Shown here piece after piece: positions 24,379-47,777 of a DNA stretch of 64,000 nt (its first letter is position 1; each line of letters starts with the position of its first letter). This stretch comes from Mantamonas sphyraenae STR306. Its lineage: Eukaryota; Protista; CRuMs. The notes beneath the pieces were generated by a model that was given only the letters and a program-made list of their open reading frames with translations, did not search any database and had not been told where the DNA came from. Made by a program: the position numbers and the translations under genes. Where the stretch lies: NCBI GenBank assembly GCA_026936335.1, contig JAPMXV010000009.1, forward strand, positions 250,493 through 314,492, written 5' to 3'.

Positions 24379-25219
24379 TCAAAAGTCGCGATGGGGCTTG
24401 GCCCAGCCCAGACGAGCCTCCATGACCTGGTGCATGTCGACGCTCTCCTCCTCTTCCTTCTCTTCAGGGTTGCCGAGGAAGTCCTCGTAGTCAATGTCTG
24501 TGTCCTTGCCGAGGAGGGTTTCAAGGCCGAGAAACTCGCTCTTGATGCCCGGGAGGCGCTGGCACTTTGCGACCATGGTCTGCTCGAGCATAAGGCGCTG
24601 CGGGAAGTGGTTGCCATACATGCGTGCAAGAGTGGTTGCACGTGACTTGGACTTCTGGTTGGACTGCTGTGGGTTTGTGGTTTTGCAATGGCGAGTGAGC
24701 GGAAAGTGGCGAAGCGAGGGAAGAGGGAAGCGGACGGAGGCACGATGAACGGGTCGGAAAACGGCATTGACGGGCTGGTTGGGCGATGGCCAATGACCAG
24801 AGACGGGGAGAACGCAAACGGAGAACGGGAGAAAGGGCGCAGGTAATGGCACGGCCGCGGAAAGGAGGGAGCGGGGAGAGGTTGGACGGAGGGAGGGGAT
24901 TGGTGGGCAGAGATTCCGTCGGGCGTGGGCAAGGCGCGGTAGGACGCCGATGGGTCGAGAGTGGACGTACCTCCTTGAGCTGCTCAATCGGGTGCTTGGG
25001 TGCCGTCTGGTGGTAGAAGCTTTGGAATCCCTCACGCAGAGTGTCGTGGGATTCACGCAACACAGGCATGGAAGCGCCAGTGGAGCTCTGCAGGTAAGGA
25101 GGTGGGCAGAAGAGAGAGTGTGGGAATGGGTTGTAGATTGGACCAAGAGTGGTGTGTGAGCGGCATGCTGCTGGCGGGTAGGGGCGTGGAAGGTGCGGAC
25201 AGCAGAGGGAACTGACCAT
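24379..25219 (-). CDS. POMP: Proteasome maturation factor UMP1/POMP; 3 exons, the first coding only ATG
   Basis: Exons 25219-25217, 25087-24971 and about 24666-24379 (tandem CAGCAG acceptor). Motifs HDTLREG, HPIE, MYGNHFPQRLMLE, RLPGIKS, LETLLGKDTDIDYEDFLG, HQVMEARLG. Confidence 0.85.
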
Positions 25220-25339
25220 TTTTGTGGAGAGGAGTTTGCTGTGTGTGTGTGCGCGGGCGAGGGCAATTTCATCGAACAGCAGAAGCAAAGAGAGTGCACT
25301 CCCCATCCGACAGACTACGAATCTATCAAACACAAGTGC

Positions 25340-26752
25340 ATGAGCTCAACACGTACGGAATCGGACCCACGCAACGAGAAGGAGTGGAGCAGAAAGGACT
25401 ACCAGCGTCTGCGGCTGCTGGGCACAGGGTCACAAGGGCGTGTGTACCTGGTGCGCAACAAACACACAGGAGACCTTTTTGCGATGAAGCAGGTGCCCAA
25501 GGGCATCGTGGCGGCGCATCAAAAGGCTCTGGAGGCGCTTGCAAGCGAACGCAACCTGCTGGCCATTGCCGACCATCCGCTGATCACGACGCTGTACCAC
25601 TGCTTCCACGACGACAAGTGGGTGTACTTTGTGATGGAGGCGTGCTTGGGCAACGAGTTTTTCGACCTGCTGAACGAGCAACCGTACGGGCGGCTGGCGG
25701 AGGCGGACCTGCGCTTCTACGCAGCGGAGATCCTGCTTGCACTGGAGTATGTGCACGCGCTGGGGTTTGTGTACCGCGACCTCAAGCCCGAGAACATCCT
25801 GCTTCAGGACAACGGGCACATCCGGCTGGCCGATTTTGGCCTGTGCAAGCAGGCTGAGGACGACACGCTGGGAGTGACCATTACGGCAGCCGCAGCAGAC
25901 AACATCCGCGTGTCGACGACCGTGCTGACGCGTGCCAACTCGTTTGTGGGCACACGCAATTACATGGCGCCCGAGACAGTGGAGGGCAAGGGCACAGACT
26001 CGATTGCGGACTGGTGGTCGTACGGCGTGCTCCTGTTTGACGTTGTGTGTGGTCTGCCGCCGTTCACGGGCTCCAACCCACACAAGGTGATGCGCAGGAT
26101 TCTGAGTGGCGAGTTTGTGTTTCCTCTGGATGTGGAACTGAGCATGGAGCTGTGCGACCTGATCCGACAGCTGCTCGTGGTGGATCCGACGCAGAGGCTG
26201 GGGTACGAGAACGGGGCGGCGGATATCAAGGCGCACCCGTGGTTCAAGGGGGTCACATGGGCGCTTGTGCCGAACGACGTGCCGCCTTTTGTGCCCACGG
26301 CACTGGATGTGGAGGACGAAGATGAATGGGACGAATTCGACGACGAAGAGATCGAGGTGATTGTGGAGGGGACGGCAGAGACGGGTCTGGGCAGCAGCGG
26401 GAAGGAGGACACGGTGAAAGCGGACAAAGACGACGGGAAGGCGGAGCTGCGGTCGCGCCGAATCGCATCGAGCAGCATCACGGCCGTGTTGATCCAGGAT
26501 CTGGAAAACGCAGAGAAGGAGTGGATAGAGGTGGAGAAGATGAAGGAGATGGAGGAAGCAGACGCAGACGAGGAGCAGGAAGACCCGTTTGACAAGTTTG
26601 ACTTTCACATCGAGGCCATCCGGTACACGACGCCGAGTGTGCCGACGCAGTCGCTGGATCATCTGCGCTCGCAGAGCGTGAGTTCGGACAGCTTCCGCAT
26701 GGGCGACGACGAGGAGGGAGAAGGTGAAGAAGGAGAGGAGAGTGCTACGTAA
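25340..26752 (+). CDS. AGC-family Ser/Thr protein kinase (Fpk1/Kin82/nrc-2-like) with acidic tail
   Basis: LGTGSQGRVYLV, FAMK, DHPLITTLY, RFYAAEILLALEYVH, YRDLKPENILL, DFG, ANSFVGTRNYMAPE, DWWSYG, RLGYENGAADIKAHPWF. The subfamily is inferred from motifs only. Confidence 0.9.
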   Translation: MSSTRTESDPRNEKEWSRKDYQRLRLLGTGSQGRVYLVRNKHTGDLFAMKQVPKGIVAAHQKALEALASERNLLAIADHPLITTLYHCFHDDKWVYFVMEACLGNEFFDLLNEQPYGRLAEADLRFYAAEILLALEYVHALGFVYRDLKPENILLQDNGHIRLADFGLCKQAEDDTLGVTITAAAADNIRVSTTVLTRANSFVGTRNYMAPETVEGKGTDSIADWWSYGVLLFDVVCGLPPFTGSNPHKVMRRILSGEFVFPLDVELSMELCDLIRQLLVVDPTQRLGYENGAADIKAHPWFKGVTWALVPNDVPPFVPTALDVEDEDEWDEFDDEEIEVIVEGTAETGLGSSGKEDTVKADKDDGKAELRSRRIASSSITAVLIQDLENAEKEWIEVEKMKEMEEADADEEQEDPFDKFDFHIEAIRYTTPSVPTQSLDHLRSQSVSSDSFRMGDDEEGEGEEGEESAT

Positions 26753-26860: not shown

Positions 26861-27632
26861 ATGTAGGTTGCAAATCCGTGTGCAGGAGGGGAGAGCGTGT
26901 GTGTGTATGTTTCGAACGGCACAGATGGCTGACACATGCGTGCCTGGTTGGGCGTTGCATCATCACAGGCAGAACGATCAGGGCAAGTTGCAGGCGAGCG
27001 GGGAGAACGCAATTTCGCGTGGAGAGTGTTTCTTTTGCCTGGGCGTTGGCCCGGATGGAGGCGGTGTAGAGGTGGACGTGCATGCGGAGGAGGAGGAGAT
27101 GGGTTGTAGGGATGCATGGGTAGGGCTGTGAAGGGCAGCAGTGGTGTGGCAGAGGTAGAAAAAGGGACCAAAAGGCGGCGGCGAATGCGTGGAGGGGAAA
27201 AACCAAGCGAGGAGAGGAAAACGAAGCTGACACAGAGACGCACGGCTTGCGGAACGACGGGATGGGTCTGCGCACGCACCATGTGGGGTGTTTACGGTAC
27301 AGGAGAACTTGTTGAGAAGTACATTCCGAGGTGCGTATGAGTCGAGAGGCGGGGCGAGGGAACGCATGCATGCGCTTTTTGGCGAGGGCGACGGAGAGGC
27401 GTGCAGGCGGACACTGACACGTGTGTACAGGAAGTGCTCGGCCACACAGAACTTGATCACCGCCAAGGACCACGCTTCGGTGCAGATCAACATCGGCAAG
27501 GTGGAGAACGGCCTGTACACTGGCGAGTTTGAGACCATTGCTCTGTGCGGCTTCATCCGCACCAAGGGCGACAGCGACGAGGCTGTGAACCACCTCGCCA
27601 CCGAGCTGGGCCTCTGCTCCAACGTTGTTTAA
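26861..27632 (+). CDS. RPS21: 40S ribosomal protein S21 (eS21); 4 exons
   Basis: Exons 26861-26862 (AT), 26969-26982, 27303-27330 and 27431-27632 splice to [37 protein letters not shown]...[13 protein letters not shown]. Confidence 0.92.
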
Positions 27633-27765: not shown

Positions 27766-29811
27766 TCAATCCGAATCCGAGTCGTCCGAGTCGTCGGAGC
27801 CGTCCTCAACGTTTGCGTTGAGCCAGATGTTGATCTCGTTGAGGAGGGTGAGTGCAGCCTGACGGTTGTGGCCACGGGCCTGGGACTTGAGCTGGTCCAT
27901 GATCTCAGTGAGGACCGGGTAGCCAAGGGAGCCGCCAATACCCTTGAGGGCATGGGCCTCCTGGAAGACGGCGTCCCAGTCTTCGTTGCCTTCGTCCTCG
28001 ATGGCGGCGCTCATGGTTCCCAGGCCGACTTCGAGATTGCCGAGGAACTGCAGCTTCATGGCACCCATCATGAGCTGCATCTCAGCCTGCTGCGAGTCGA
28101 CTGCGCTCATGTTGCCATGCTCGTCATTGTCCAGGAGGGATGCGGAGAGCTTGTCGTTGATGTGTGCAAACAGATTGGCCTCCTCGTCGACCTGCAGGCC
28201 CTCGAGAAAATCCTGCAGGGAAGCTACAGCCTGTTCGACAAGGGTTGCGTTCTGGTCAGCGGCCTGGTTGCGGATGACGGCGCTGATGGTTGTGACCTGG
28301 TCGAAGCCAAGCATCTTGCCGACGCCCTTCATGACGTGTGCTCGCTTGTAGATGGTGTCAAAGTCGACGGGATCGGACGCAAGGGCGTTTACAATGAGGT
28401 CTGTGTCGTGTTTGACGTCCTCGATGAAGCGGGCCTTCATGAGGAGGATGGCTGGGCGGAGCTGTGCCTCCTCGTCGTTGACGGGAGACGCAGGCGTGCC
28501 TGCTTCGACGTTGCCCATGTCCAAGTTGCTGAAATCTACACTGCCAAACCCGATGGTGTTGGCGTACTCCTCGGTGACCATATCGTCGCCGTCTACATCG
28601 TCCGTGTCGTCTGCGTCCACCTGCTCCTGTTGAACAATAGTGTGCAGGTCGCCGATGAGGGCTTCGCATGCAGACGCATCTTCCTCTGCAGCGGCGTCCT
28701 TAAGGCTCTTGCACAGGGTGCGGATGTTGGAGGAGTGCAGGTGGCCGCCGATGCCGCCGAGGGTGTGAGCCAGCTTGCGAATGCCTGCAAAGTCGCCTGC
28801 GTCGAGCTTGTCACGGAGAGCGGCCACGTCGCGTGCGAGGTCACCCTTGAACTTGTCACGGATGGCACCGATGATAGTGCTCATGTCCATGGAGGCCATT
28901 TGTTGGCCTGGCTTGGAGGAGGAGGATGCGGAGGAGGAGGAGGCTGCGTTTGCCGGCTCGTGGTCCATCATCTGTTCCTGCTCGAGCTGCTTGGCGTCAG
29001 CGCTGTTGGCGACGTTGCCGAGGCTGGCCATGAGGGCATCGCCCAAGCCGTCGAGCTGGTTGCCTGCGTTGTTTTTGTCCAGAAGGGCGCGGATGGGATC
29101 TTTGAGCTTGGAAGGGTCTTCCGGGTCGATTGGTTTGCACACGACTCCGTCGAAGCCCAGGCTCATGAGGCGCTTGACTTCAGAGTCCTCGTCGCCATCT
29201 CCAGTCAGGGCTGCAGTGTGTAGAGATGCGGGTGTGGATTGTTAGTGGTGGTGTTGGGGGTGGTGGTGGCAGGGCCGAGTTGGCAGGCGTGGAAGAACGA
29301 GGTGGAAGTTTTTGTGCCACTGACCAAGAATCGGCATTGCCGCGGTTTGCTCGGCCTCGCGCAGCTTGACGACAACCTCGTCGCCGTTCATCTCGTCCAT
29401 GTAGATGTCGAGGAGGAGCAGGTCAAAGTCTTCCTCGTCTGCGGATGCGGGAGGGCAAAGGGGGCCATGTGAGCAAGGGAATAGGAGAGAGCAGCCATGG
29501 AAGGAAAAAGAGGGGCGGTGGAGGGGACCCGAGACGTGAACAACAAGAAGGACATACCTTCCAGCAAGGTTTCCAGCACCTCGGGACCATCGTCGACAGT
29601 CTCCACCTGGTACTCGTCGCTGAGGATCATCTTGACGAAGAAGTGGATCTCGGGACGATCATCCGCAAGGAGGATCTTTTTGGTCATCGCGAGCGGTGGG
29701 TTGTGCTGGTGGCTGAAGCGTGGGCTGTGCCTGAGAGGCGACGAGACATGCGGAGCATGGCGATTGCTACTACCCTTGCGGCTGCTTGTGGTACTTGCAG
29801 ATGTGCTTGTA

Positions 29812-29842
<31 letters not shown>

Positions 29843-30575
29843 CTGAGCTGCAGCTGTTGGTAGTGCACTCGTCGTCGGCTGCGGCGGATCGAGTGCGAAG
29901 CAGAGCCTGCAAAGTCAACGCCATGCCCTTGCCTCCGAGAGCTTGGACATCTGCAAGGTGTGCCCTCCTGAGTGTTTCTTCCTCCTCGTCCAGCGTCGAG
30001 TTGTTGGAATATGCACGTGGACGGGAAATGTCAAAGTGAGCGCGCGCGTCACGCAGCTCGTCGCTTTCGTTGATGACAAGGCCGGATACGGGCCCGTCAG
30101 AGGAGTAGCTCCGCGGAGATATACCTCGCGGGCTGGTTTTGTACAGTTCCAGTGCAGCTTCCCATTCGCGGTACTCCTTGGCCGTGTCCAGGTCGATGCG
30201 CTCGTAGGGGAGGCGGGTGCCCAAACTTTTTGTGCGGCTGGAGGCCGCTGGAAAGTTGCGTTTATCCGACGGAGTGCTGCTGCTACTGCTGCTGGCAGCA
30301 CTGCGCTGTTCGTTGCGGTCGTGGATGGAGAGAGTAGCCAGTCGCCGTCGTACACTGCGAGACTCGTGGTCCAGGGGCGTGTCAAATTCGGGAGCACCTG
30401 GACGCTGGGGCGGTTCGTCGAAGATCCGTGTTGGGCGTTCCAGGCCCCTTTTCTGCCGCGGCGATTCACGAAAGTCGTGCTGGATGTATGCCTCGTCATT
30501 GTCACCGCCGCCTTCATCCTCTTCCTCGTGTGGCTCACGGTAATTTTGGAACGCATCGTCTGCGTCCAACTCCAT
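27766..30575 (-). CDS. Response-regulator receiver + three tandem HPt domains, with a long disordered N-terminus; 3 exons
   Basis: Exons 30575-29558, 29438-29325 and 29210-27766. Spliced receiver: KILLADD...FDLLLLDIYMDEMNG...MPILALTG...GFDGVVCKP. HPt motifs: AHTLGGIGGHL, AHVMKGVGKMLG, AHALKGIGGSLG. Confidence 0.85.
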
Positions 30576-30727: not shown

Positions 30728-31711
30728 TCAGTGGAATCGGGCGAGGGCCGGAGGCACAGGGAAGGCAGTCTTTTTGGGAGGATTCTGGGCACGGTAGAGA
30801 GTAAGGGTCATGGTCATGGTAGGTCGGATGGTGAGGATGAGGAAAGCCATGTGGATGCCCGTGCGGATGATGCTCGTGCCGCTGACCCGAGCCAACTCGG
30901 GGCAGTCTGTGCCTGGTGGGCAGCGCTCGACGCTGAGGGTGTACTGGTTGATGGCGCTGATAATATTGAGGGACATGATGATTGCGCACAGGCCATTGAC
31001 AGCAAAGAGGATGAGCAGCAAGCGGTACGACCAGCCTGTGGACCTGCGGAAGCGGAACACCACGAGCATCCCGCACACAATGGCGCTGAGAATATAATAG
31101 TAGACGTCTGCGTCGATGACGAAGGAAGTGGCAGTGATCGAAGCGTGAATCCCACACGCGAGTGTGACCAACTGTGTCGTAAACGGTCGTGGGCGTGTCA
31201 GAGCGAAGGGAGAAAGGGGGGTGGCCAGCGTCGGTGGACGAGTACACGGCAGGAGAGCATGGGAGCGCAGGTGGCAGCTGGGCACTGGAATGGATTGCAC
31301 CTGCGCACGATATTCATCGTGAAGGCGCAGGCGGAACGGCAGTGTGTGCAGAAGAGAGGGAGGGGAAACGAGAAAGGAAGGGCCGGCAAAACAACGGCTT
31401 GCAAAACCCGTTGTGTTCTGGATGGGTGTGCGTTTGGCCGTCGCCCAGGCAGGCATGGGCGGGCAGAAGGCCGTCGCAAAACAACGTACGACATTGAGTA
31501 CGTTTGCTCCTACGAACACCACCGATGGTTGCTGCAGCAGGGTCTTGTCAGAGGCATCGTAGGTGGCCGAATCGTCTTGCGTGGGCGGGTTCGCTTGAAA
31601 CGGGGAAACGGCGGGGCCAAAGTTGGTGCCGCGGTAGTGAGCACGCATGGGCGATGCTCGCTCCTGCGAACCCAGCAGCATAGCAGAGGATGATGAGGAT
31701 GATGATGCCAT
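30728..31711 (-). CDS. Small four-transmembrane protein of unknown family; probably 2 exons
   Basis: ATG at 31711 and a likely intron at 31489-31172 (GTACGT...ACAG, 318 nt, in frame). Four hydrophobic segments, with a CPPGTDC loop before the last helix. Confidence 0.6.
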   Translation of the reverse strand: MASSSSSSSAMLLGSQERASPMRAHYRGTNFGPAVSPFQANPPTQDDSATYDASDKTLLQQPSVVFVGANVLNVVRCFATAFCPPMPAWATAKRTPIQNTTGFASRCFAGPSFLVSPPSLLHTLPFRLRLHDEYRAQVQSIPVPSCHLRSHALLPCTRPPTLATPLSPFALTRPRPFTTQLVTLACGIHASITATSFVIDADVYYYILSAIVCGMLVVFRFRRSTGWSYRLLLILFAVNGLCAIIMSLNIISAINQYTLSVERCPPGTDCPELARVSGTSIIRTGIHMAFLILTIRPTMTMTLTLYRAQNPPKKTAFPVPPALARFH

Positions 31712-38143: not shown

Positions 38144-38285
38144 ACAAAGGGAGTTGGATGAGGCTGACCTCAGGTGTTGATTTTGGTGGTGGGGTTGCGG
38201 TTGCGGAGGGAGCAGTTCCGAACGGGCGGAGTTGGCGCCAAACAAACGCTTTCTGCAGTGGCTCGTGAGGGTCGCCGACGACGTC

Positions 38286-41200
38286 ATGGAGACCATTTCC
38301 AGTGGGGACCTGTCGGTGATCCAAACCATCATTGCCAGGGCGGCAGAGATGCATCCGCACACGTCGCCATTGACGTTGTCGCAGGTGTTGGACGCGTACG
38401 GCGAAGTTGTGCGCGAGCCTGAGGCGCACCTGTACGAAGTGTTGCTGCAGATGTCGATGTTGCCGTACCGGGACTGGTGGAGCAAGTTGGAGCACGTGCA
38501 TCCGACGACTCACCTGCTGCTCAGCGAAACGTTGCACAGATGGCGACGGTTTGCGACCGAGAGAGCGGCGAATCGCATGCAAGCCATCAACAATTGGGGC
38601 GCTGCTATTTCGCTTTGGGAGCTGCACGCTCTGCGGCGAAGTTTTGGGCGGTGGCAAGAGATGGTGGGGAGGCGGAGACGGATGCAGGTGTCGCTGAAAG
38701 TCGTCCGTCCTCTGACGCAGCTGTCCGTGTGTTTCGATGCACTGCGAGCTCACGCGCTGAAGCACAGACGGCAACGGATTCATTTATTTCAGGCAGTGTC
38801 GCATTGGGCAGCGCAGCATGCGCGCAAACACCTGCGGGCGTGGCGGTGGACAGCTGTGCCACTGGCGGCCGTGCGGCGCAACAAGCTGCTGGAGCGCACG
38901 TTTACACGCTGGCACCGGTACAGCCAACTTGTGCGGGCACAAGTTGCGCTGGTGACACGGCAGCACACGAGAGTGGCCAGACAGGCTGTGGAGACGTGGA
39001 CGAGGGCGCGGAAGTTTCGCGCGCTGACACGACGAGTGCGTGTGGGCGTGGCACGCACATGCGTGCGACACTGGATGGCCCATGCGATTGTACAAAGGTC
39101 GAAAACAAGCGAGCGGGTGCTGGTGGTGTACTTTTGGAAGTGGCGCAAGCGTGCGGGGCAGGCAAGCGCCCAACGGCAAAAAGACAAGGCGGCCGATGCG
39201 CTGTGGACGGCGCAGCTGAAGCGAAGGGTGCTTAGCAGCTGGCATCGATGTGTGCAACTGGAGGCCATTTGGATGCAGTGCAGCCGCAGAAGCAACACAC
39301 GGCGTGTCCAAACGTGTTTGAGGCACTGGTGGACGTCTGCGCGCGCGCGGCGCATTGCACGCCGCGCCGTGGGACACTTTCGCAATCTGGCGCTGTCGTC
39401 GTGCTGGACACAGTGGACTCAGCATGTGCAGCAGCAGCGTGAGACCAAGGAACGCGTGCGGCAACTGCTGGTGCGCATGCAGAACCAGAGCGTGGTGCGG
39501 GCCTTCAACACGTGGCGCCAGTACGTACGTATGCAGGCACAGCTGCGCAAAGGGCGCAAGCAAGTGGAGGTGTACCACAAAGTGCGCGTGTTGCGTGAGT
39601 GGCACTATCGTATGCGCGCTCGCCGCCTTGTGCGCAGCGTGGTTTTGCGGCTGCAGGCCGCGCTGCTAGCACGGTCGTTCTCGACGTGGTACGCACACGC
39701 ATCGGTGTACAGACAGACACGACGTCAATCGGATCGGGTGATTGCGTTTTGGAGCAACAGGTTGCAAGCACGAGCGTTTTCAACGTGGCGAGCAAACGTG
39801 AAGGGCCAGCATTCGTTGCGGCGCAATTCGCAGCGTGCGCTGGGCCATCTGGCAAACAGGCAATTGAGCAAGGCGTTCTACACGTGGCAAAGTGCAACGG
39901 CGTACCTGCGCAGGGTAAACGAGTGTGCCACGGCCGTGGCGGCCATCCAGCGACACAACACGGTCGAAAGGCACCTGGAGGTGTGGTTTCATGCTTTGCA
40001 GGTGCGCGCAGCTGCAACATTGGTGCAGCGCATGAACCGTGCGCGGACATTGCATCGCTATTTCATGCACTGGGGGGAACGTTTGCGCCACCGCGAACGG
40101 CTGATGCAGTTGTTGTTTCGCATGCAACACCACGCGCTGGCACGTGCATTTGCGACATGGCGCGCCACAGTGGCGTACATGGGCGATGTGAACATGCGTG
40201 CTCAGCGTGCTCGCTTGGTGCACGATTATTTTCTGCTGCGGAGGAGCCTGCAATCTTGGCTGTTCTCCCTGCGCGTGCGCCTCTCAATGCGCACCGCACT
40301 TGCCTCGTGGGCTCACAGGTTGGCTGCTGCTGCTATGGGCAGTTGGAGAGCGTATGTCATTCAACGACACATCAAGATGGCTTTGTACGCGAAGGCGGAC
40401 AAAGTTCGGCAACGCGCCTTGCTTCTGCGCTGGAGGCGCAGGGCAGGCGTACACCATCGCGTCAAGTCTGCGTTGGCTGCTTGGGCTCACATCAGCACAC
40501 ACCGAGCGTGGACGACTCTACGGGCGTATGTGGAACACCGACAGCGGAAGGAGCGCTTGCGCGAGGCCGCGTACATTTTTGCGCGCACGTCTTCCATACA
40601 CCACGCCTACGTTGTATGGCTACGTGCAATGGCACAGTGTCAGGAACAGAGGCGGAACGCAGACAGGATGACTGCGCAGCGGCAAAGGAGAACGGTAGCC
40701 AGCATGCTGGCACATTGGCTGGATCTTGCGCAACGTGCACAGAGAGGGCGGTATGTGGTGCTACGCTGGGAGCACCACGTGGTGTTGCGCGCATGGCAAA
40801 CCTGGGCCAGGTACCATGCGCATAGGCAAGCAAAACGCGAGATTGGGGACATGGCGCGGCTGTTTGAGAGACGTGTGGCGGTGCGCACTGCGCTGCAGCA
40901 ATGGACTATGCTGTGGATAGGGGTGCGCATGCTGGAGCATCGTGTGGAAGATGCGCTCGTGTCGCGCGAGTGGACGCGACTACGGACGAGCTGGGACTTG
41001 TGGAAGCGACGCATGGACCTGCGCAGACGTGGACGTGTGTTGGCTGTGAGATGGACACGCATGACAACGCTGCGTGCCTACAGGTCGTGGACGGCGTACG
41101 TAGAGCACAGACGAGAGAAGCAGGCGATGGCATGGGAGGCCAACGCGTTTGCCCAACGTACGATGACGTGGCGGGCGCACAAGCACTGGAAACACGCAAC

Positions 41201-44200
41201 TGCACATGTGCGACAGACGTTGCTGGAGCACGCGTTCAACTCGTGGCTGTTTGTACACCAACAGGAACGGTACGAAGCGCAGGCGCAGCAGGTGGTGAAT
41301 CGCCGTCGCCAAGAGGCGCTTGCACGAAGCATGATGACGAGGTGGCGCCAACGGCTTGGTCAGATGCGCATGGGACGGCGTGTTGTGCTACGTGTACAAC
41401 GGCAGCTTGTGGCCAGCGCGTTCGAGTCATGGCTGTTCTTTGCGCGCATGGAGATGCATCTGCGAGGCGCGGAGCAATTGGTACAGTACCGTCAGAATGT
41501 GACGCGGGCGAGGCGTGTGTTGGAGCACTGGATGCACCAGTGGAACGGATTGGCGTCGTCTCGCGTTCTGTTTGCGCGTTTGCAACAACGGGATTTGATG
41601 CGTGCGTGGAACAGGTGGATGGAGTACACGCAGCAGATGGCTAGCGTGCGCGCCATTGGACAGCGCATGCAGCATTCTCTGCTGGCGATGGCGTGGCGTT
41701 CGTGGGTAGCCATGGTAAGCGGCGTGCGGCAGGAGCGACGCTCGCTGACCGCGTTTGCAGAGTTCCATGAGCGTGTTGTGATGCACCGGTATGTGCAGGT
41801 GTGGCACACGACGCTGATGATGCGCCGAGCGATTGCCAACTGGCGAGTGGGTCGTTGTTGGCGTTCATGGCTGGATTTCCATGCGTACGCACAACGGGAG
41901 CGCCGCGCGGACGAGTATGTGGGCGGAGTGCAGCGATACAACATCCTGTCGGAGTACCTGGGAATGTGGTACACGCAGTGGGAGCTGCACCGAAAGATGC
42001 GGCGTGTTGTACAGACGATGCAGTCGCGCGCGCTTGTGCGCACGTTTGAGCGCTGGATAGAGTTTACAGAGCAGATGAGGAGTATGCGGCGCATGCTGCG
42101 GCGCATGCAACACGGATTGATGGCGCAGGCGATGGCGGCCTGGCATGTCGTTGTGGACGGCAGGCAGCAGGAACGTGCGCGTATGGCGGAGTTTACACGC
42201 CACCAACAGATCCAAAGTTTGCAACGATGCTTGAAACAGTGGCGTGCAGTGATGGTCATGCGTCGGGTGTTGGCCAACTGGCGACTGGGCCGATGCTGGC
42301 GCTCGTGGATGGAGTTTCACGCGTTTGCGAGGAGGGAACGCCGAATGGACACGTACGTGGGCCAGGCGCAGCGCATGCATGTGCTCGAGCGCTACATGGA
42401 TGTGTGGTGGACACAGTACGAAGTCCACCGGCGCATGCGAGGCGTGGTGGCTGCCATGCAGCAGCGACACATGCGCTTCGCTTTCAACCGCTGGATGGAG
42501 TACGCACGGCAGCTGGCTAGTCTGGGACGCATGGTACGGCGCATGCGGCGTATGCAGCTTGTGCAGGCGTTCAATTCGTGGCAGATTGTGGTGGAAGGGT
42601 CAAAAGCGGACAAGGCACGGATTGCAGAGTTTCACGCTCACCGATCTGTACAGGTTGTGCTTCGCTGTTTGAAGCAGTGGCGTGCTGTGCTGTTGATGCG
42701 ACGGGTGGTGTCTCAGTGGCGCTTGGGTCGATGCTGGCGTTCGTGGAAAGCGTTCCACCGTGAGTCGTCACATGAACGGCGTGTGGAAGCCCATGTGCAC
42801 AGTACTCGGCGCAACAATATCCTATGGTGGGCACTTGGCACGTGGTGGGAGCGTTTGGAGATTCACAGGCGCGGGCGCACTGTGTTGGCGAGGATGCAGC
42901 ACAGGCAGGTTGCAGGGTCATTCCGGCGGTGGGAAGAGTTTGTGTACCAAATGCGCAGTCTGCGCAGGATGATGGGACGTATGCAGAACGCAACCATTCA
43001 CCAGGCGTTTGCATCATGGCGAGGTGTGGTGGAAGGACGCAAGCGAGAGGAGGCGTTGGTATCGCACTTTAGGCAGGCAAACATGCAGCTGGCTGCGCAG
43101 CGACTGCTTGTGCACTGGCATGCGTGTCTACGTGTGCGGCGAACTCTTCTGATGTGGCGCCTTGGGCGATGTTGGCACAGCTGGCAGGCGTATGTTGGTG
43201 CAGCGCGCGCAGAGCGTGGGCGCATGGCGGTTGTAGAGCGTCGACACGAGCGCATACGCGTGGTGCAGTGCTTGCGAGTGTGGTGGGCAGAGCTGCAACG
43301 GAGGAAGCGCATGCGAACGATTGTGCACTCGATGAAGCACCAGCAGTGCCGTTGGGCGTTCAACAGGTGGATGGAGTACATGGAGCAGGTGGAGAGATTA
43401 CGGCAGCTGGGGAGACGTGTGGTGCACATGAGCTGTGGACGTGCGTTTACGACATGGCGTGCCGTTGTGACTGCACGCAAGGATGAACATGCTCGTCTGG
43501 TTCGGTTTGTGGCTGATTGCGAGACACAGGTGTCGTACAGGGCATTGATCCACTGGGTCGACGCTCTGAACGGGCGCAGGATGAAGCGTGCTCGCTTGCT
43601 GCGTGTATGGCATGGCTATCTGGTGAAACTCCGCCATGCAGAGGCGCGGGTTCGCCTGCAGCATGAGCGGCTGCGCGCGTTTGACACTCTGGAGCGATGG
43701 TCGCGTGCATACGAGGCCAACGTGGCGTGGATCGAGCACTTGGTGCATCTTGCGTTTCACAGATGGCACCGTGTGGCTGTGTTGCATGTGGCGGAGCGTG
43801 AAGCAGTGGACCTGTGGGAGTTTCGTACGCAAGCAAACGCGTTCCGGCGGTGGTTGCTTGTGGTGCGACTTGAACACACGTTTGCGGTGGTGCATACCAC
43901 GTACAAGCTGAAGCTTGTGACAAAGGCGCTCAACCAGTGGATCCGGGACTTTAACGGATTGCGACAAACGCGTGTTCGCCGCCGCATGCGTTTGGCGCAC
44001 AAGCACCTCTTGATGTGGGTGCGGCATTTCGACTTGCACCAACGCTTGTGTCTGGCCGACACTCGACGCTACTTGGCGGTGATGGGAACATGTTTTGGAG
44101 GCTGGCGGACGGAGGCGCGACATCTGCGCAACAAGCGCATTGCGCTGCAGTATCGAGCGTTTTCATTGTGTAGCCGAGTGATGCAGGCGTGGCACGTACA

Positions 44201-47200
44201 CAGTGCGTGGCAAGCACGTGCGCGTGTGGTGTTGGCGCGCTTTGTGTCCCGATGGCAGCACCGTTCGGTTGCGCACGCGTTCCAGCAGCTGCGGCAACAT
44301 GTGGTGTGGTGGGCGCGTGTGTGCAACGAAGCCGAAGAGCTGTGGCAAGCAGCGCAGGTTCGCCGAAAGGGAGAGATTGTTGCGCGATGGCGCGAGCATG
44401 TGCGTGTGAATGGCATCGGGCGCGCGTGGATGGACTCGCGTGATCGAAGGCTGGTATCGCGTGTTCTGCGTTCATGGAGGCTTGCGTACGTGGCAGGACG
44501 GCGCGCGGATGAGTGGCGAGTGTACATGACGCGTGTGAGGGCGTTGACAAAGTGGAGGCTTCACCTGCGACACCGGATGCAAATGCAGGAGGGAATGCGG
44601 CAGGTGCGACAAGTGATTGCACGGAACTGGTGGGCTCGATGGCAGGGTGCTGTGGTGGGCCGGCGCCGAGAAAAGCGAGTGTTGGCGGATGCACTTGTGC
44701 ATTGGGTCATGCTGTACCGAAAGCGTGAAGAGCTGCACGGCCACTTTGACGCGCTGATTGCAGAGCATGAACTGCGCACGGTGGCCCGCTACATGCAGCG
44801 ATGGTGGGTGCGTCAACAGATGCAGCGTCGCGTGAAGCGGAAAGAGGAGGAGGTGAAACGACAGGCGTACAGGCACTGGCAGGCGGCGTGGAGACTGCGC
44901 GTACTGCGCACGTCGCAGTTGCAACGTGTTCTGGAACAGCTGCAGGGCGTGCGACGGCGCCAGGTGTGGCAGAGGTGGACTGAAGCGTACGCGGAGAATC
45001 TGGAGCTACGCACACGGTTCTACCTTTGCCGGTGGGCAAACGCGCTCGCGCGACGAGAAACGATACGGCGAGTCGTGTACGCTGTGCAGCATCTGTACGT
45101 GCGCCACAGCATGAACACATGGAAGGAGCGTACGGCCGGAGCGCGGCGGACGCGATATATCGTCAAGGTGCGTGTGATGCAGGTTTGGAAACGTGCGCAT
45201 GTGCAGGGGAGACACGAGAAGTACCTGCTGAAGGAGTGGGAAACGAGGTGCAAGGGGGTTTTGTTTGCGCGTTGGATTGCACGTATGAGGCAGCACGTGC
45301 ACAATCGCGTGCTTGGCATGCGCGTGGTGCATGCGATGACCAACCGCCGGCTGTTTTCGTCGTTTACGAGCTGGCGTGGGTGGGCTTCATACCAACGAAG
45401 CCTGGCACGCCGGAAGAGCGAGGTGATGGAAGAAGAGCGGCGCATGCTTGCTGTGCGCGTGCTGGTGGGCTGGCAAACGGTGTTTGTCAACACGCGGCGT
45501 GCTGTGCAGCATCACGAAGCCCAAGTGCAAGCGGTGGTGATGAAAGAGTGGATGCAGGTGGTGGAGGAGTCGCAAGAGTACGTGAGGTTCCAGCGAGGCT
45601 GTGTGTTCAGGCGCTGGCAGCAGCGCATGAGCGCTCGGCAACGCATCCGCGGAGTCATTGCTGGAATGCGAAATGTGATTGTGCGCCGCGCGATGAACCG
45701 CTGGATCGAGTACACGCGTGTGGAAGGGATGGCAAGCCGTGTGGTGCAGCGACGTGCGCTGTTGCAGTGGTACCATGCGACACGCCATGAGATGGAGGAA
45801 CGCTCGGCGATACACGGATTCCAGGTGCAGCAACTGCGCAAGTGGCTGCGGCTGTGGGTACATCAGCGCCGCTTGCGCGTGCGTGTGGTGTCGGCCATGA
45901 CGAAGCGGCGTCTGTACGCAGCGTTCGGCACATGGAGGGCATGGGTTGCGTACGAACGGTGCTGCGGCGCACGGTTGCGTTCACACGCGTGGGGAACATG
46001 GCTGTTTGCGTTTGAGAGCGCAGTGGCATCACGTGAGCACTACGAACAGAGACTGCAGCGCAGTGTGGTTCGGGCGTGGATGGAATGGAGCGGCGAAGGG
46101 CGAAGCGCAAGAGTGTTTCAAGGACGGGTGTGGCTGCGGCGATGGATGAAGAGCGTGAACGTGCGCAGGCGAGTGCTGTCAGCGATTGCATCGATGCAAA
46201 ACGTGCTGGCTAGGCGCTGTCTGAACGCGTGGACGTCCTACGTTCGCGTGTCCAGGTTCCGCTGGCAGCACTGCGCTGAGGCACACTTTCATGCGTGGCG
46301 TCGACATGTGGTGCGGCAGCGAGAGGTTCAAGAGGAGCTGCTACGTGCGCGGGAAGTGCAAACGTTGCTTGCATTGCATGAGCGACGTGGGGCACTGCGG
46401 CGTTTGGGCCGCGTGGTGGATGCGTGGCGGCTGTGGGTGACGCAGGTGCGGATGGATCGTGTGCGCAGCGAGGCGGTGATGTTGTCGAATGTGCTCCGTG
46501 CGTGGTATATGCTCGTGGTGTCGCACAAGCGGGTTCGTGGTTTGGAAGCACACATGCGTGTGCACACCCTACGGGAGGGCCTTGCCATGTGGCGTGCAGG
46601 GGTGCTTGGTCGACGAGCGCTGCGAAGGCGAACAGTGCGCGTGTGGCATGCACGGCTGATGTGGGTACGAGAGCTGGATACGATGGACACTGCGTTGCTG
46701 CTTCCGTGCAAAGCACGCGTGCTACGCCACTGGTGGCACGCGAGTGTGCACCATCGCCACTTGCGCATGATGGAGGAGGAGCTGGGGGATCGGGAACGGA
46801 CACAATCGCTGCGGCGGGTGCTGGACACGTGGCGCGTGCAATGGTTGCGCGTGCGCACGGTGCGCAGGCGAGCATGGAAGACTTGGCGTCGACTGAGTGT
46901 ACTGTGCCGAGGTATGCGCATTTGGAAGCAGGGCGTCGAGAAACGTGCGACGTCTGAACTTTTGCACACGAGCTTGGCACGATGGCACGGTGTGGCGCGG
47001 CTGTGGCGAATGCAACGACGTCGTGTACAACGTGAAGGTTTGCTGGAATGGCGCGCGGCAAGCGTGTGGAGCAGACAACGAAAGAGGACGTTGCTGGCAA
47101 GATGGGTGCGATTGTGGAGGGAGGTCGCGCGGGTGAAGGAGATTGGAGAGGCAATGGTGCGAAAGAACGATCAGCAGCGTGTGCGCCACGCACTCGAGCG

Positions 47201-47777
47201 ATGGAAAACAGTCATGGAAGAGCACAGGATGCTGGAAGAGCGATTTGTTGTTCTGAAGAAGCAGCGTGGCAGCAGACTGGTGCGCCAAAGCTTGCTGGAA
47301 TGGCGAGCATGTGTGTGGCAGCGGCGCGTGCAGAAAGAGACGTACTGGGCCAAGTGGAAGGGGCGGTGGGAGCAGGTGAACAGCCTGAAGGCGCAGGCAG
47401 AACGGGCATCGCGAGAACGTGAGACGCGAATGCTGCAGCATGCAATGGCAAACTGGTGGCAGCGACTGGCGTTGATGCGTGCAGTGGGAGAGTTTAGCCT
47501 GGAGCGGCAGTCTGGGTGGCTGCGGGGCATCTTTGTGGCGTGGCTGCGATTGTCGTTGGAGGCAGAAGGAAGGCGGCAACGCGAAGTGTACGCAGCTTCG
47601 TGGTATGCAAAGCGCCTGATGAGTGATGCGTTCTTCCGCTGGCGCATCGGATCGAATGTGGGCGGAGAAGCTCACGTGGAGCAGCTCTTCGGAGTGCCGT
47701 CGATGCCGGTGGGCGTGACGCTGCTGCGAGACTCAATCGCTTTGGGTCTTGTCAGTCGATCGGCTCGAGAGCTGTGA
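38286..47777 (+). CDS. SFI1: Giant Sfi1-repeat (centrin-binding) protein, about 3160 aa, intronless
   Basis: Very long ORF made almost wholly of Arg-rich repeats ending L..[AF]F..W. The first in-frame ATG is at 38286 (the ORF track starts at a TTG at 38232). Confidence 0.8.
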   Translation: METISSGDLSVIQTIIARAAEMHPHTSPLTLSQVLDAYGEVVREPEAHLYEVLLQMSMLPYRDWWSKLEHVHPTTHLLLSETLHRWRRFATERAANRMQAINNWGAAISLWELHALRRSFGRWQEMVGRRRRMQVSLKVVRPLTQLSVCFDALRAHALKHRRQRIHLFQAVSHWAAQHARKHLRAWRWTAVPLAAVRRNKLLERTFTRWHRYSQLVRAQVALVTRQHTRVARQAVETWTRARKFRALTRRVRVGVARTCVRHWMAHAIVQRSKTSERVLVVYFWKWRKRAGQASAQRQKDKAADALWTAQLKRRVLSSWHRCVQLEAIWMQCSRRSNTRRVQTCLRHWWTSARARRIARRAVGHFRNLALSSCWTQWTQHVQQQRETKERVRQLLVRMQNQSVVRAFNTWRQYVRMQAQLRKGRKQVEVYHKVRVLREWHYRMRARRLVRSVVLRLQAALLARSFSTWYAHASVYRQTRRQSDRVIAFWSNRLQARAFSTWRANVKGQHSLRRNSQRALGHLANRQLSKAFYTWQSATAYLRRVNECATAVAAIQRHNTVERHLEVWFHALQVRAAATLVQRMNRARTLHRYFMHWGERLRHRERLMQLLFRMQHHALARAFATWRATVAYMGDVNMRAQRARLVHDYFLLRRSLQSWLFSLRVRLSMRTALASWAHRLAAAAMGSWRAYVIQRHIKMALYAKADKVRQRALLLRWRRRAGVHHRVKSALAAWAHISTHRAWTTLRAYVEHRQRKERLREAAYIFARTSSIHHAYVVWLRAMAQCQEQRRNADRMTAQRQRRTVASMLAHWLDLAQRAQRGRYVVLRWEHHVVLRAWQTWARYHAHRQAKREIGDMARLFERRVAVRTALQQWTMLWIGVRMLEHRVEDALVSREWTRLRTSWDLWKRRMDLRRRGRVLAVRWTRMTTLRAYRSWTAYVEHRREKQAMAWEANAFAQRTMTWRAHKHWKHATAHVRQTLLEHAFNSWLFVHQQERYEAQAQQVVNRRRQEALARSMMTRWRQRLGQMRMGRRVVLRVQRQLVASAFESWLFFARMEMHLRGAEQLVQYRQNVTRARRVLEHWMHQWNGLASSRVLFARLQQRDLMRAWNRWMEYTQQMASVRAIGQRMQHSLLAMAWRSWVAMVSGVRQERRSLTAFAEFHERVVMHRYVQVWHTTLMMRRAIANWRVGRCWRSWLDFHAYAQRERRADEYVGGVQRYNILSEYLGMWYTQWELHRKMRRVVQTMQSRALVRTFERWIEFTEQMRSMRRMLRRMQHGLMAQAMAAWHVVVDGRQQERARMAEFTRHQQIQSLQRCLKQWRAVMVMRRVLANWRLGRCWRSWMEFHAFARRERRMDTYVGQAQRMHVLERYMDVWWTQYEVHRRMRGVVAAMQQRHMRFAFNRWMEYARQLASLGRMVRRMRRMQLVQAFNSWQIVVEGSKADKARIAEFHAHRSVQVVLRCLKQWRAVLLMRRVVSQWRLGRCWRSWKAFHRESSHERRVEAHVHSTRRNNILWWALGTWWERLEIHRRGRTVLARMQHRQVAGSFRRWEEFVYQMRSLRRMMGRMQNATIHQAFASWRGVVEGRKREEALVSHFRQANMQLAAQRLLVHWHACLRVRRTLLMWRLGRCWHSWQAYVGAARAERGRMAVVERRHERIRVVQCLRVWWAELQRRKRMRTIVHSMKHQQCRWAFNRWMEYMEQVERLRQLGRRVVHMSCGRAFTTWRAVVTARKDEHARLVRFVADCETQVSYRALIHWVDALNGRRMKRARLLRVWHGYLVKLRHAEARVRLQHERLRAFDTLERWSRAYEANVAWIEHLVHLAFHRWHRVAVLHVAEREAVDLWEFRTQANAFRRWLLVVRLEHTFAVVHTTYKLKLVTKALNQWIRDFNGLRQTRVRRRMRLAHKHLLMWVRHFDLHQRLCLADTRRYLAVMGTCFGGWRTEARHLRNKRIALQYRAFSLCSRVMQAWHVHSAWQARARVVLARFVSRWQHRSVAHAFQQLRQHVVWWARVCNEAEELWQAAQVRRKGEIVARWREHVRVNGIGRAWMDSRDRRLVSRVLRSWRLAYVAGRRADEWRVYMTRVRALTKWRLHLRHRMQMQEGMRQVRQVIARNWWARWQGAVVGRRREKRVLADALVHWVMLYRKREELHGHFDALIAEHELRTVARYMQRWWVRQQMQRRVKRKEEEVKRQAYRHWQAAWRLRVLRTSQLQRVLEQLQGVRRRQVWQRWTEAYAENLELRTRFYLCRWANALARRETIRRVVYAVQHLYVRHSMNTWKERTAGARRTRYIVKVRVMQVWKRAHVQGRHEKYLLKEWETRCKGVLFARWIARMRQHVHNRVLGMRVVHAMTNRRLFSSFTSWRGWASYQRSLARRKSEVMEEERRMLAVRVLVGWQTVFVNTRRAVQHHEAQVQAVVMKEWMQVVEESQEYVRFQRGCVFRRWQQRMSARQRIRGVIAGMRNVIVRRAMNRWIEYTRVEGMASRVVQRRALLQWYHATRHEMEERSAIHGFQVQQLRKWLRLWVHQRRLRVRVVSAMTKRRLYAAFGTWRAWVAYERCCGARLRSHAWGTWLFAFESAVASREHYEQRLQRSVVRAWMEWSGEGRSARVFQGRVWLRRWMKSVNVRRRVLSAIASMQNVLARRCLNAWTSYVRVSRFRWQHCAEAHFHAWRRHVVRQREVQEELLRAREVQTLLALHERRGALRRLGRVVDAWRLWVTQVRMDRVRSEAVMLSNVLRAWYMLVVSHKRVRGLEAHMRVHTLREGLAMWRAGVLGRRALRRRTVRVWHARLMWVRELDTMDTALLLPCKARVLRHWWHASVHHRHLRMMEEELGDRERTQSLRRVLDTWRVQWLRVRTVRRRAWKTWRRLSVLCRGMRIWKQGVEKRATSELLHTSLARWHGVARLWRMQRRRVQREGLLEWRAASVWSRQRKRTLLARWVRLWREVARVKEIGEAMVRKNDQQRVRHALERWKTVMEEHRMLEERFVVLKKQRGSRLVRQSLLEWRACVWQRRVQKETYWAKWKGRWEQVNSLKAQAERASRERETRMLQHAMANWWQRLALMRAVGEFSLERQSGWLRGIFVAWLRLSLEAEGRRQREVYAASWYAKRLMSDAFFRWRIGSNVGGEAHVEQLFGVPSMPVGVTLLRDSIALGLVSRSAREL
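41580..43560 (+). repeat. Higher-order 438-bp (146-aa) tandem repeat, about 4.5 copies, inside the Sfi1-like gene
   Basis: The equivalent motif xRW[MIE]E[YF] starts at 41610, 42048, 42486, 42924 and 43362. WR[VL]GRCW[RH]SW occurs four times. Confidence 0.85.

Follow-up and report, generated by a model that had tools for sequence, protein, structure and literature searches.

A kinase-less receiver protein with three HPt domains in Mantamonas sphyraenae, apparently shared with malawimonad-type eukaryotes

Gene structure and domain content

The window, by which we mean the whole 64,000-nucleotide stretch of Mantamonas sphyraenae STR306 DNA that was analysed, carries on its minus strand a three-exon gene whose 858-amino-acid model comprises a low-complexity N-terminal tail (N-tail), a receiver domain (REC) and three HPt domains, in this order (Table 1). 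The exons add up to 2577 nucleotides, which corresponds to 858 amino acids and a stop codon. Both introns are obligatory because the length of the first is no multiple of three, so that its retention shifts the frame, and the second, if retained, introduces an in-frame stop.

Table 1 Features of the phosphorelay gene (window coordinates) and of two-component genes elsewhere in the Mantamonas genome (contig coordinates)
Feature	Position	Strand	Details
Exon 1	30575-29558	minus	ATG at 30575
N-tail, 296 aa	29688-30575	minus	Exon 1; low-complexity, S/R/A/E-rich
Receiver β1-α2	29558-29687	minus	End of exon 1; acidic pair D305/D306 in LADD
Intron 1	29557-29439	minus	119 nt, GT..AG, phase 1
Exon 2	29438-29325	minus	Receiver β3-α3 with the phospho-accepting Asp
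Phospho-accepting Asp D350	codon 29409-29407	minus	LLDIYM, exon 2
Intron 2	29324-29211	minus	114 nt, GT..AG, phase 1
Exon 3	29210-27766	minus	End of receiver, three HPt domains, stop
Receiver β4-α5	29071-29210	minus	Start of exon 3; Thr T380, Lys-Pro K403
HPt repeat 1	28630-28863	minus	37.6 bits; His codon 28767-28765 (H526)
HPt repeat 2	28192-28437	minus	35.0 bits; His codon 28338-28336 (H669)
HPt repeat 3	27823-28050	minus	39.9 bits; His codon 27954-27952 (H797)
C-terminal end	27766-27822	minus	End of last helix, acidic D/S tail, TGA stop
HK-REC-HPt (ArcB-type) kinase	C53:339.6-343.2 kb (L034)
HK-REC-HPt (ArcB-type) kinase	C20:205.9-207.7 kb (L035)
HK-REC-HPt (ArcB-type) kinase	C12:96.2-100 kb (L039)		HPt weak
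Two tandem PAS kinases	C20:51.6-58.0 kb (L040)		Near-identical cores; Pfam PAS in first
Single HPt gene	C42:312.0-312.7 kb (L041:4500-5150)		Intron-split
Receiver + class I PDE domain	C45:72.3-74.4 kb (L038:4254-6385)		Receiver intact-looking
PAS + kinase-like core	C3:403.9-407.1 kb (L042:2911-6144)		H-box His replaced; receiver-like stretch
2243-codon frame	C5:228.7-235.5 kb (L037)		Single chain with two kinase cores plus two receiver-like domains

We assessed the receiver one exon at a time. Its pieces match the Response_reg profile (PF00072) in profile order across the exons: the end of exon 1 spans profile positions 1-38 at E = 0.008, and exon 2 spans 40-72 at E = 2.6e-5. The start of exon 3, which carries the Thr and the Lys-Pro, gives a weak match to the same HMM. 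Read in this exon-wise manner, the first two pieces reach 16.7 and 24.8 bits against a whole-domain Pfam cut-off of 30.2 bits and against 74.7 and 75.8 bits for intact relatives, and the acidic pair, the phospho-accepting Asp, the Thr and the Lys-Pro are all present in (βα)5 order. The proposal in the initial annotation of this DNA that splicing of two introns yields a complete receiver thus holds for the predicted gene, with four of the four catalytic features kept and Response_reg matched piecewise.

All three repeats that the initial annotation had assigned to the HPt family (PF01627) by their signature His lie above the Pfam cut-off of 24.6 bits, at positions that agree with it within 2 nucleotides. 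Each carries the His and a Gly at position H+4, the latter being required for phosphotransfer in Ypd1 (PMC6341664). In repeat 1 the Lys at H+3 is replaced by Gly, which may make phosphotransfer through this repeat slow. Repeats 2 and 3 keep both Lys H+3 and Gly H+4; repeat 2 does so in the form KGVG, as in all full-length relatives (see below), and is predicted to be the most canonical phosphotransfer site in every family member. The repeats are highly divergent and, in the region around the His, agree with one another at 14-16 of 57 positions.

The AlphaFold2 model of exon 3 (480 amino acids) contains three helical bundles joined by low-confidence linkers, with block pLDDT mostly 85-98, and the His residues sit in model helices 140-156, 283-300 and 411-427. 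Its top structural matches are the HPt domains of RcsD/YojN (Z 13.9, rmsd 1.6) and HptB (Z 13.7), followed by a fungal HPt (Z 12.8), AHP2 (Z 11.7) and Ypd1 (Z 11.2), in alignments that mainly cover repeat 1 and with Z values of which those near 13 are moderate for helical bundles. Structure prediction, which had been suggested as a check, returned the three repeats as confident helical bundles whose nearest neighbours are HPt domains. A Foldseek search with the 480-residue model gave no match at E below 0.001, and a sequence search of the PDB gave weak HPt and CheA P1 matches only.

The N-tail matched no Pfam family, is present in a single copy in the Mantamonas genome and has no paralogue there. 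Its frame is the top-scoring of six in three out of three blocks, and the 296 codons are probably coding. It contains four S-P-R motifs compared to 0.33 expected in shuffled sequences (p = 0.0004, for a motif picked post hoc), which are possible proline-directed kinase sites. The in-frame Met at 29687 could serve as an alternative start.

Neither a HisKA nor a HATPase domain was matched on contig C9 in a profile search, a local kinase-core HMM found nothing in the window, and CheW gave no match in this protein. The statement that the window lacks a histidine kinase thus held for the window and for the contig, and fusion of the gene to an upstream kinase is ruled out by the lack of a kinase core in either. 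The gene had also been read as an integrated host gene, a view borne out by the introns and host-like codon use; bacterial contamination is ruled out by these two features together with the eukaryotic neighbours.

Downstream lie convergent genes for ribosomal protein S21e (27288-27632, plus strand) and for a protein kinase that looks AGC-like by eye (25193-26752, plus strand), and we saw no evidence of a functional link of the phosphorelay gene to either. Upstream, a gene for a small multi-pass membrane protein (30728-31260, minus strand; no Pfam family) ends about 150 nucleotides before the start codon, and a splice link between the two genes is conceivable. Elsewhere in the window, a 3198-codon open frame (38181-47774, plus strand) has a coding-like GC pattern and no Pfam match at E 0.001.

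Relatives and descent of the array

A HMMER scan with exon 3 against 1.84 billion representatives returned 94 relatives, the best match being protein EP00698 P004190 of the malawimonad Gefionella okellyi (E = 8e-21), which is collinear with exon 3 across the three repeats at 24% identity and whose receiver is cut at the 5′ end. The other members of this malawimonad-type group are environmental (P0104, P0108, P0103, L044, L045 and L047). P0104 is a complete, uninterrupted REC-HPt-HPt-HPt protein of 498 amino acids on an intron-free JGI contig and has a near-identical genomic copy with a 37-nucleotide intron (L047); P0108 is a second 498-residue member. L045 is an intron-split genomic locus, and L044, which opens with the receiver, has a eukaryotic gene of the PSMD12/CSN4 type as its back-to-back neighbour. 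Judged by their introns or neighbours, the environmental sequences are eukaryotic, and within-group identities of 40-64% suggest that they derive from malawimonads. No kinase was found upstream of the malawimonad-type members, L044, L045 and L047 included.

The relatives, which are about 498 amino acids long, lack any N-tail, and 76 residues separate their receiver Lys from the repeat 1 His compared to 123 in Mantamonas. In the full-length relatives, repeats 1 and 2 keep the His, Lys and Gly, and the His of repeat 3 is lost, which makes this repeat a putative pseudo-HPt domain. The structural model of P0104 (pTM 0.47) has one receiver followed by three bundles, joined by linkers of low confidence, the His-less repeat 3 still forming a bundle.

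Other searches returned less. A word-index search with exon 3 gave no match, a weak negative since HMMER found 94 relatives, and the ESM Atlas, queried by features and by shape, yielded generic bacterial HPt and receiver clusters only. Three weak loci emerged from a scan of bacterial and archaeal genomes and none from a scan of viral genomes, and the metagenome loci inspected other than L047 are single HPt genes or ordinary hybrid kinases.

Two observations concern the surroundings of the environmental loci. The same divergent gene, thiamine pyrophosphokinase-like by eye, lies upstream in both L045 (1-800) and L047 (385-1044), the two loci being closely related. An ORF without a Pfam match (L061:1633-2454) abuts the stop codon of P0108; we take it to resemble tyrosine-recombinase transposon proteins, and it may have changed how repeat 3 of P0108 ends.

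In a tree of the concatenated three repeats, in which three-repeat outgroups are few and the Mantamonas branch is long, the four eukaryotic arrays group together at 99/96, apart from 22 bacterial arrays, and have the bacterial P0013/P0097 as their weakly supported sister (82/82). Of 144 HPt units, Mantamonas repeat 1 and repeats 1 and 2 of the malawimonad type are the only ones to carry the box H-x-x-x-G-x-G-G-[HN]-L, the form HT-x-x-G-x-GGHL being common to repeat 1 of both. In-register pairing of the repeats was the best of six orders in three out of three comparisons, by a narrow margin for Gefionella, and an AU test on single domains did not reject one clade (p = 0.52). Considering (i) the same rare architecture, (ii) the shared box, (iii) the in-register pairing, and (iv) the concatenated tree, the Mantamonas and malawimonad-type arrays are likely to share a common descent. 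Counting against this, the Mantamonas repeats fall at scattered places among bacterial HPt domains in unconstrained single-domain trees, which do not resolve their origin, some bacterial HPt domains outscore the Mantamonas repeats on malawimonad profiles, and the Mantamonas receiver pieces resemble the malawimonad type no more than they do others.

We lean slightly towards a broader proposition, namely that these proteins would constitute an undescribed, eukaryote-specific family of kinase-less REC-HPt-HPt-HPt phosphorelay proteins inherited from the common ancestor of CRuMs and malawimonads, which would form a dedicated trans-acting relay and buffer layer of a kind not known from the fungal, plant and amoebozoan systems, and in which some repeats would have stayed active and others become pseudo units for docking or as decoys.

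Candidate partners and models of function

The partner search covered the 25,061,354-base assembly in 78 contigs, in line with the published FALCON assembly of M. sphyraenae (25.06 Mb, 78 contigs, 59% GC; PMC10492846). All partner counts are lower bounds, that of receivers in particular, as intron-split receivers barely score. The search of the genome for kinase partners called for in the initial annotation returned receiver-bearing hybrid kinases on C53, C20, C12, C51 and C5. Three of the kinases found have the ArcB-type HK-REC-HPt layout (Table 1), which has been reported in eukaryotes from Physarum and Albugo only (PMC6324907).

Two tandem PAS kinases on C20 have intact H, N and G boxes, with the H-box His kept, and give no receiver match by profile; their C-termini look like degenerate receivers that have lost the acidic pair and the Lys, a reading made by eye. 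A PAS protein on C3 with a kinase-like core ends in IQ calmodulin-binding motifs and is a possible pseudo-kinase link to calcium signalling. The single HPt protein encoded on C42 is the likely equivalent of Ypd1/RdeA. The sole other non-kinase phosphorylatable receiver detected, on C45, is joined to a PDE domain in the layout of RegA (PMC11988041). An alignment to PDE4D shows the catalytic His and most of the metal ligands to be missing from this PDE domain, which rules out an active RegA-like output and marks the protein as a predicted pseudo-enzyme.

From the domains, catalytic residues, fold, kinase absence and candidate partners described above, we infer a direction of flow, partners and a signalling role. 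With a probability of roughly one half, the protein is a free-standing REC and HPt module, the detached back half of a hybrid kinase, which would act in trans as a phosphoryl relay with buffering and serve kinases that have no working receiver of their own. A sensor kinase of this kind, for which the C20 tandem PAS kinases are candidates, would phosphorylate Asp350. The phosphate would then pass to the HPt histidines by way of the flexible linkers and be exchanged reversibly between these and other receivers, namely that of the C45 pseudo-PDE, the likely output, and those of the hybrid kinases. The extra repeats would provide capacity or docking surface, and hence a delay or threshold, and no separate channels.

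This relay in trans is suggested by (i) the retention of all receiver catalytic positions and of three His/Gly(H+4) boxes, (ii) the order of REC followed by HPt(n), which is that of the tail of bacterial HK-REC-HPt3 kinases such as P0013/P0097, P0095 and P0083, (iii) a genome that encodes a full relay of hybrid kinases, the C42 HPt and the C45 receiver, (iv) the two C20 kinases that keep the H-box and yet give no receiver match, and (v) kinase-less orthologue candidates in which the receiver and the histidines of both repeat 1 and repeat 2 are kept despite a large distance. Furthermore, mobile tethered domains are expected of such a relay, which agrees with the bundles on low-confidence linkers in the P0104 model. 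Counting against it, direct phosphorylation of the C45 receiver by the C20 kinases is possible, the C42 HPt and three kinase-fused HPt domains are already available as shuttles and may make a relay role redundant, repeat 1 is devoid of the Lys at H+3, and the degeneracy of the C20 receivers was read by eye.

The sink or threshold device suggested in the initial annotation is plausible in kind and, as a full account of the protein, rather unlikely. In such a drain, the HPt repeats would collect phosphate from the receivers of kinases and from that of the output protein, and the tethered receiver would hydrolyse it, thereby setting a threshold and shutting the signal off. Reverse relay is known for the receiver and HPt of ArcB, as are CheY-type sinks. 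Reverse phosphate flow is likewise known in the RdeA-RegA relay (PMC11988041), and a receiver tethered to three HPt domains with no output domain is what a drain needs. The genome has seven His-bearing HPt domains against one detected output receiver (lower bounds), a ratio that suits a buffer better than a distributor. However, a drain uses the same parts as a forward relay, the sequence gives no direction of flow, and kinases whose receivers are degenerate depend on a trans-acting acceptor.

It is less probable still that the protein is a terminal response regulator, in which the phosphorylation state of the receiver would itself be the output and control binding through the N-tail or the bundles, with the HPt repeats serving as antennas or docking scaffolds. 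Ssk1 is a precedent for a terminal response regulator. Few outputs were detected in the genome, the N-tail is disordered and its S-P-R excess offers a possible link to proline-directed kinases, and the His-less repeat 3 conserved in the relatives implies a non-catalytic binding role. The protein has no effector domain, however, and the absence of the N-tail from the relatives means that a conserved function cannot depend on it.

The fan-out to several outputs envisaged in the initial annotation, in which each HPt would serve a different downstream response regulator, fared poorly against the genome and is now quite improbable. The three repeats are very divergent and could differ in specificity, and the receiver count is a lower bound; yet the one other non-kinase phosphorylatable receiver detected sits on a dead PDE, the relatives have lost the His of repeat 3, and repeat 1 departs from the canonical box in Mantamonas.

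Finally, an artefact of the gene model, by which the receiver and the HPt array would belong to different genes or stem from the tail of a kinase that was mis-assembled, can draw on the uncertain start codon and is very hard to sustain, because the final third of the receiver lies in the same open exon as the three HPt domains, so that the two cannot be separate genes, both introns are canonical and obligatory, no kinase core was found on contig C9, and P0104 is an uninterrupted full-length relative whose genomic copy has an intron of 37 nucleotides.

Comparison with known two-component systems

The architecture is real and rare, apparently undescribed, and shared with malawimonad-type eukaryotes. 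Its rarity, already noted in the initial annotation, is underlined by its absence from two published censuses. In one, of 43,426 prokaryotic genes, all ten three-HPt proteins also have a transmitter and a handful of two-HPt proteins do not (PMC3018481, Table 7); the other (PMC4558063) lists no receiver with three HPt domains alone among 50 architectures (Table 2) and reports multi-domain two-component proteins of eukaryotes to be devoid of HPt. A eukaryote-wide kinase survey found single HPt tails only, in Physarum and Albugo (PMC6324907). In the literature, coverage of which is incomplete, we found no account of a REC-HPt3 family, nor of two-component signalling in either Mantamonas or Gefionella.

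Characterised eukaryotic His-Asp relays run from a hybrid kinase through a single small HPt protein to a response regulator. CRuMs and malawimonads rank among the deepest branches on the side of the tree that holds animals, fungi and amoebozoans, and a kinase-less receiver with three HPt domains in both would show that the early eukaryotic relay layer was more varied. The shared design suggests that eukaryotic two-component signalling has an old branch that has gone undescribed. It also offers a small soluble protein for testing why several HPt domains stay in one chain, be it for capacity and threshold or for specificity, with the His-less repeat of the relatives as a natural control.

Bacterial unorthodox kinases, of the ArcB/BarA type (HK-REC-HPt) or with two to five HPt domains (HK-REC-HPt2-5: P0013/P0097, P0095, P0083 and P0045), have the same order of REC followed by HPt(n) and a similar repeat spacing. 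They supply the best bacterial matches and the weakly supported sister, and differ by the sensor, HisKA and HATPase, which are absent from the Mantamonas protein; with no HisKA and HATPase_c in its chain, the latter falls outside the HK-REC-HPt(n) kinases. The complete bacterial three-HPt proteins among the matches are hybrid kinases, and the short kinase-less bacterial matches that were checked look like fragments, P0002 and P0021 starting at contig edges, and P0025 may be one as well.

The initial annotation had looked to ChpA/CheA-like kinases, which resemble the Mantamonas protein in carrying several HPt domains per chain. There, however, the HPt domains are N-terminal, upstream of the kinase (PPPTR order; PMC3018481), are substrates of the chain's own kinase and are accompanied by CheW. 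The order is reversed in the Mantamonas protein, which has neither kinase nor CheW, and the nearest model is instead the bacterial HK-REC-HPt(n) type with its HPt domains after the receiver.

Ypd1, AHP and RdeA share with the Mantamonas protein the four-helix fold, the His, the Gly at H+4 and a likely role as a shuttle between receivers, but consist of one HPt and no receiver, as opposed to three HPt domains with a receiver of their own. The protein is not the Mantamonas equivalent of Ypd1 because a separate single HPt is encoded on C42.

Like the module proposed here for Mantamonas, Spo0F-Spo0B and RcsD link kinases to a response regulator through a receiver and a phosphotransfer unit. Both act in trans, Spo0B having a different, dimeric fold and RcsD a pseudo-kinase and a membrane region. 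The Mantamonas protein differs from Spo0F-Spo0B in being a single fused chain with three HPt domains. Gefionella and the environmental relatives have the same kinase-less REC-HPt-HPt-HPt architecture and differ from the Mantamonas protein in the tail, the linker and the third His, with low sequence identity and receivers that are not especially close. The chemistry is familiar, so that what is new here is a wiring and not a mechanism: by analogy, the protein would work as an unorthodox kinase's tail does, or as a fused Spo0F-Spo0B pair, outside the hybrid kinase, ChpA and Ypd1 families.
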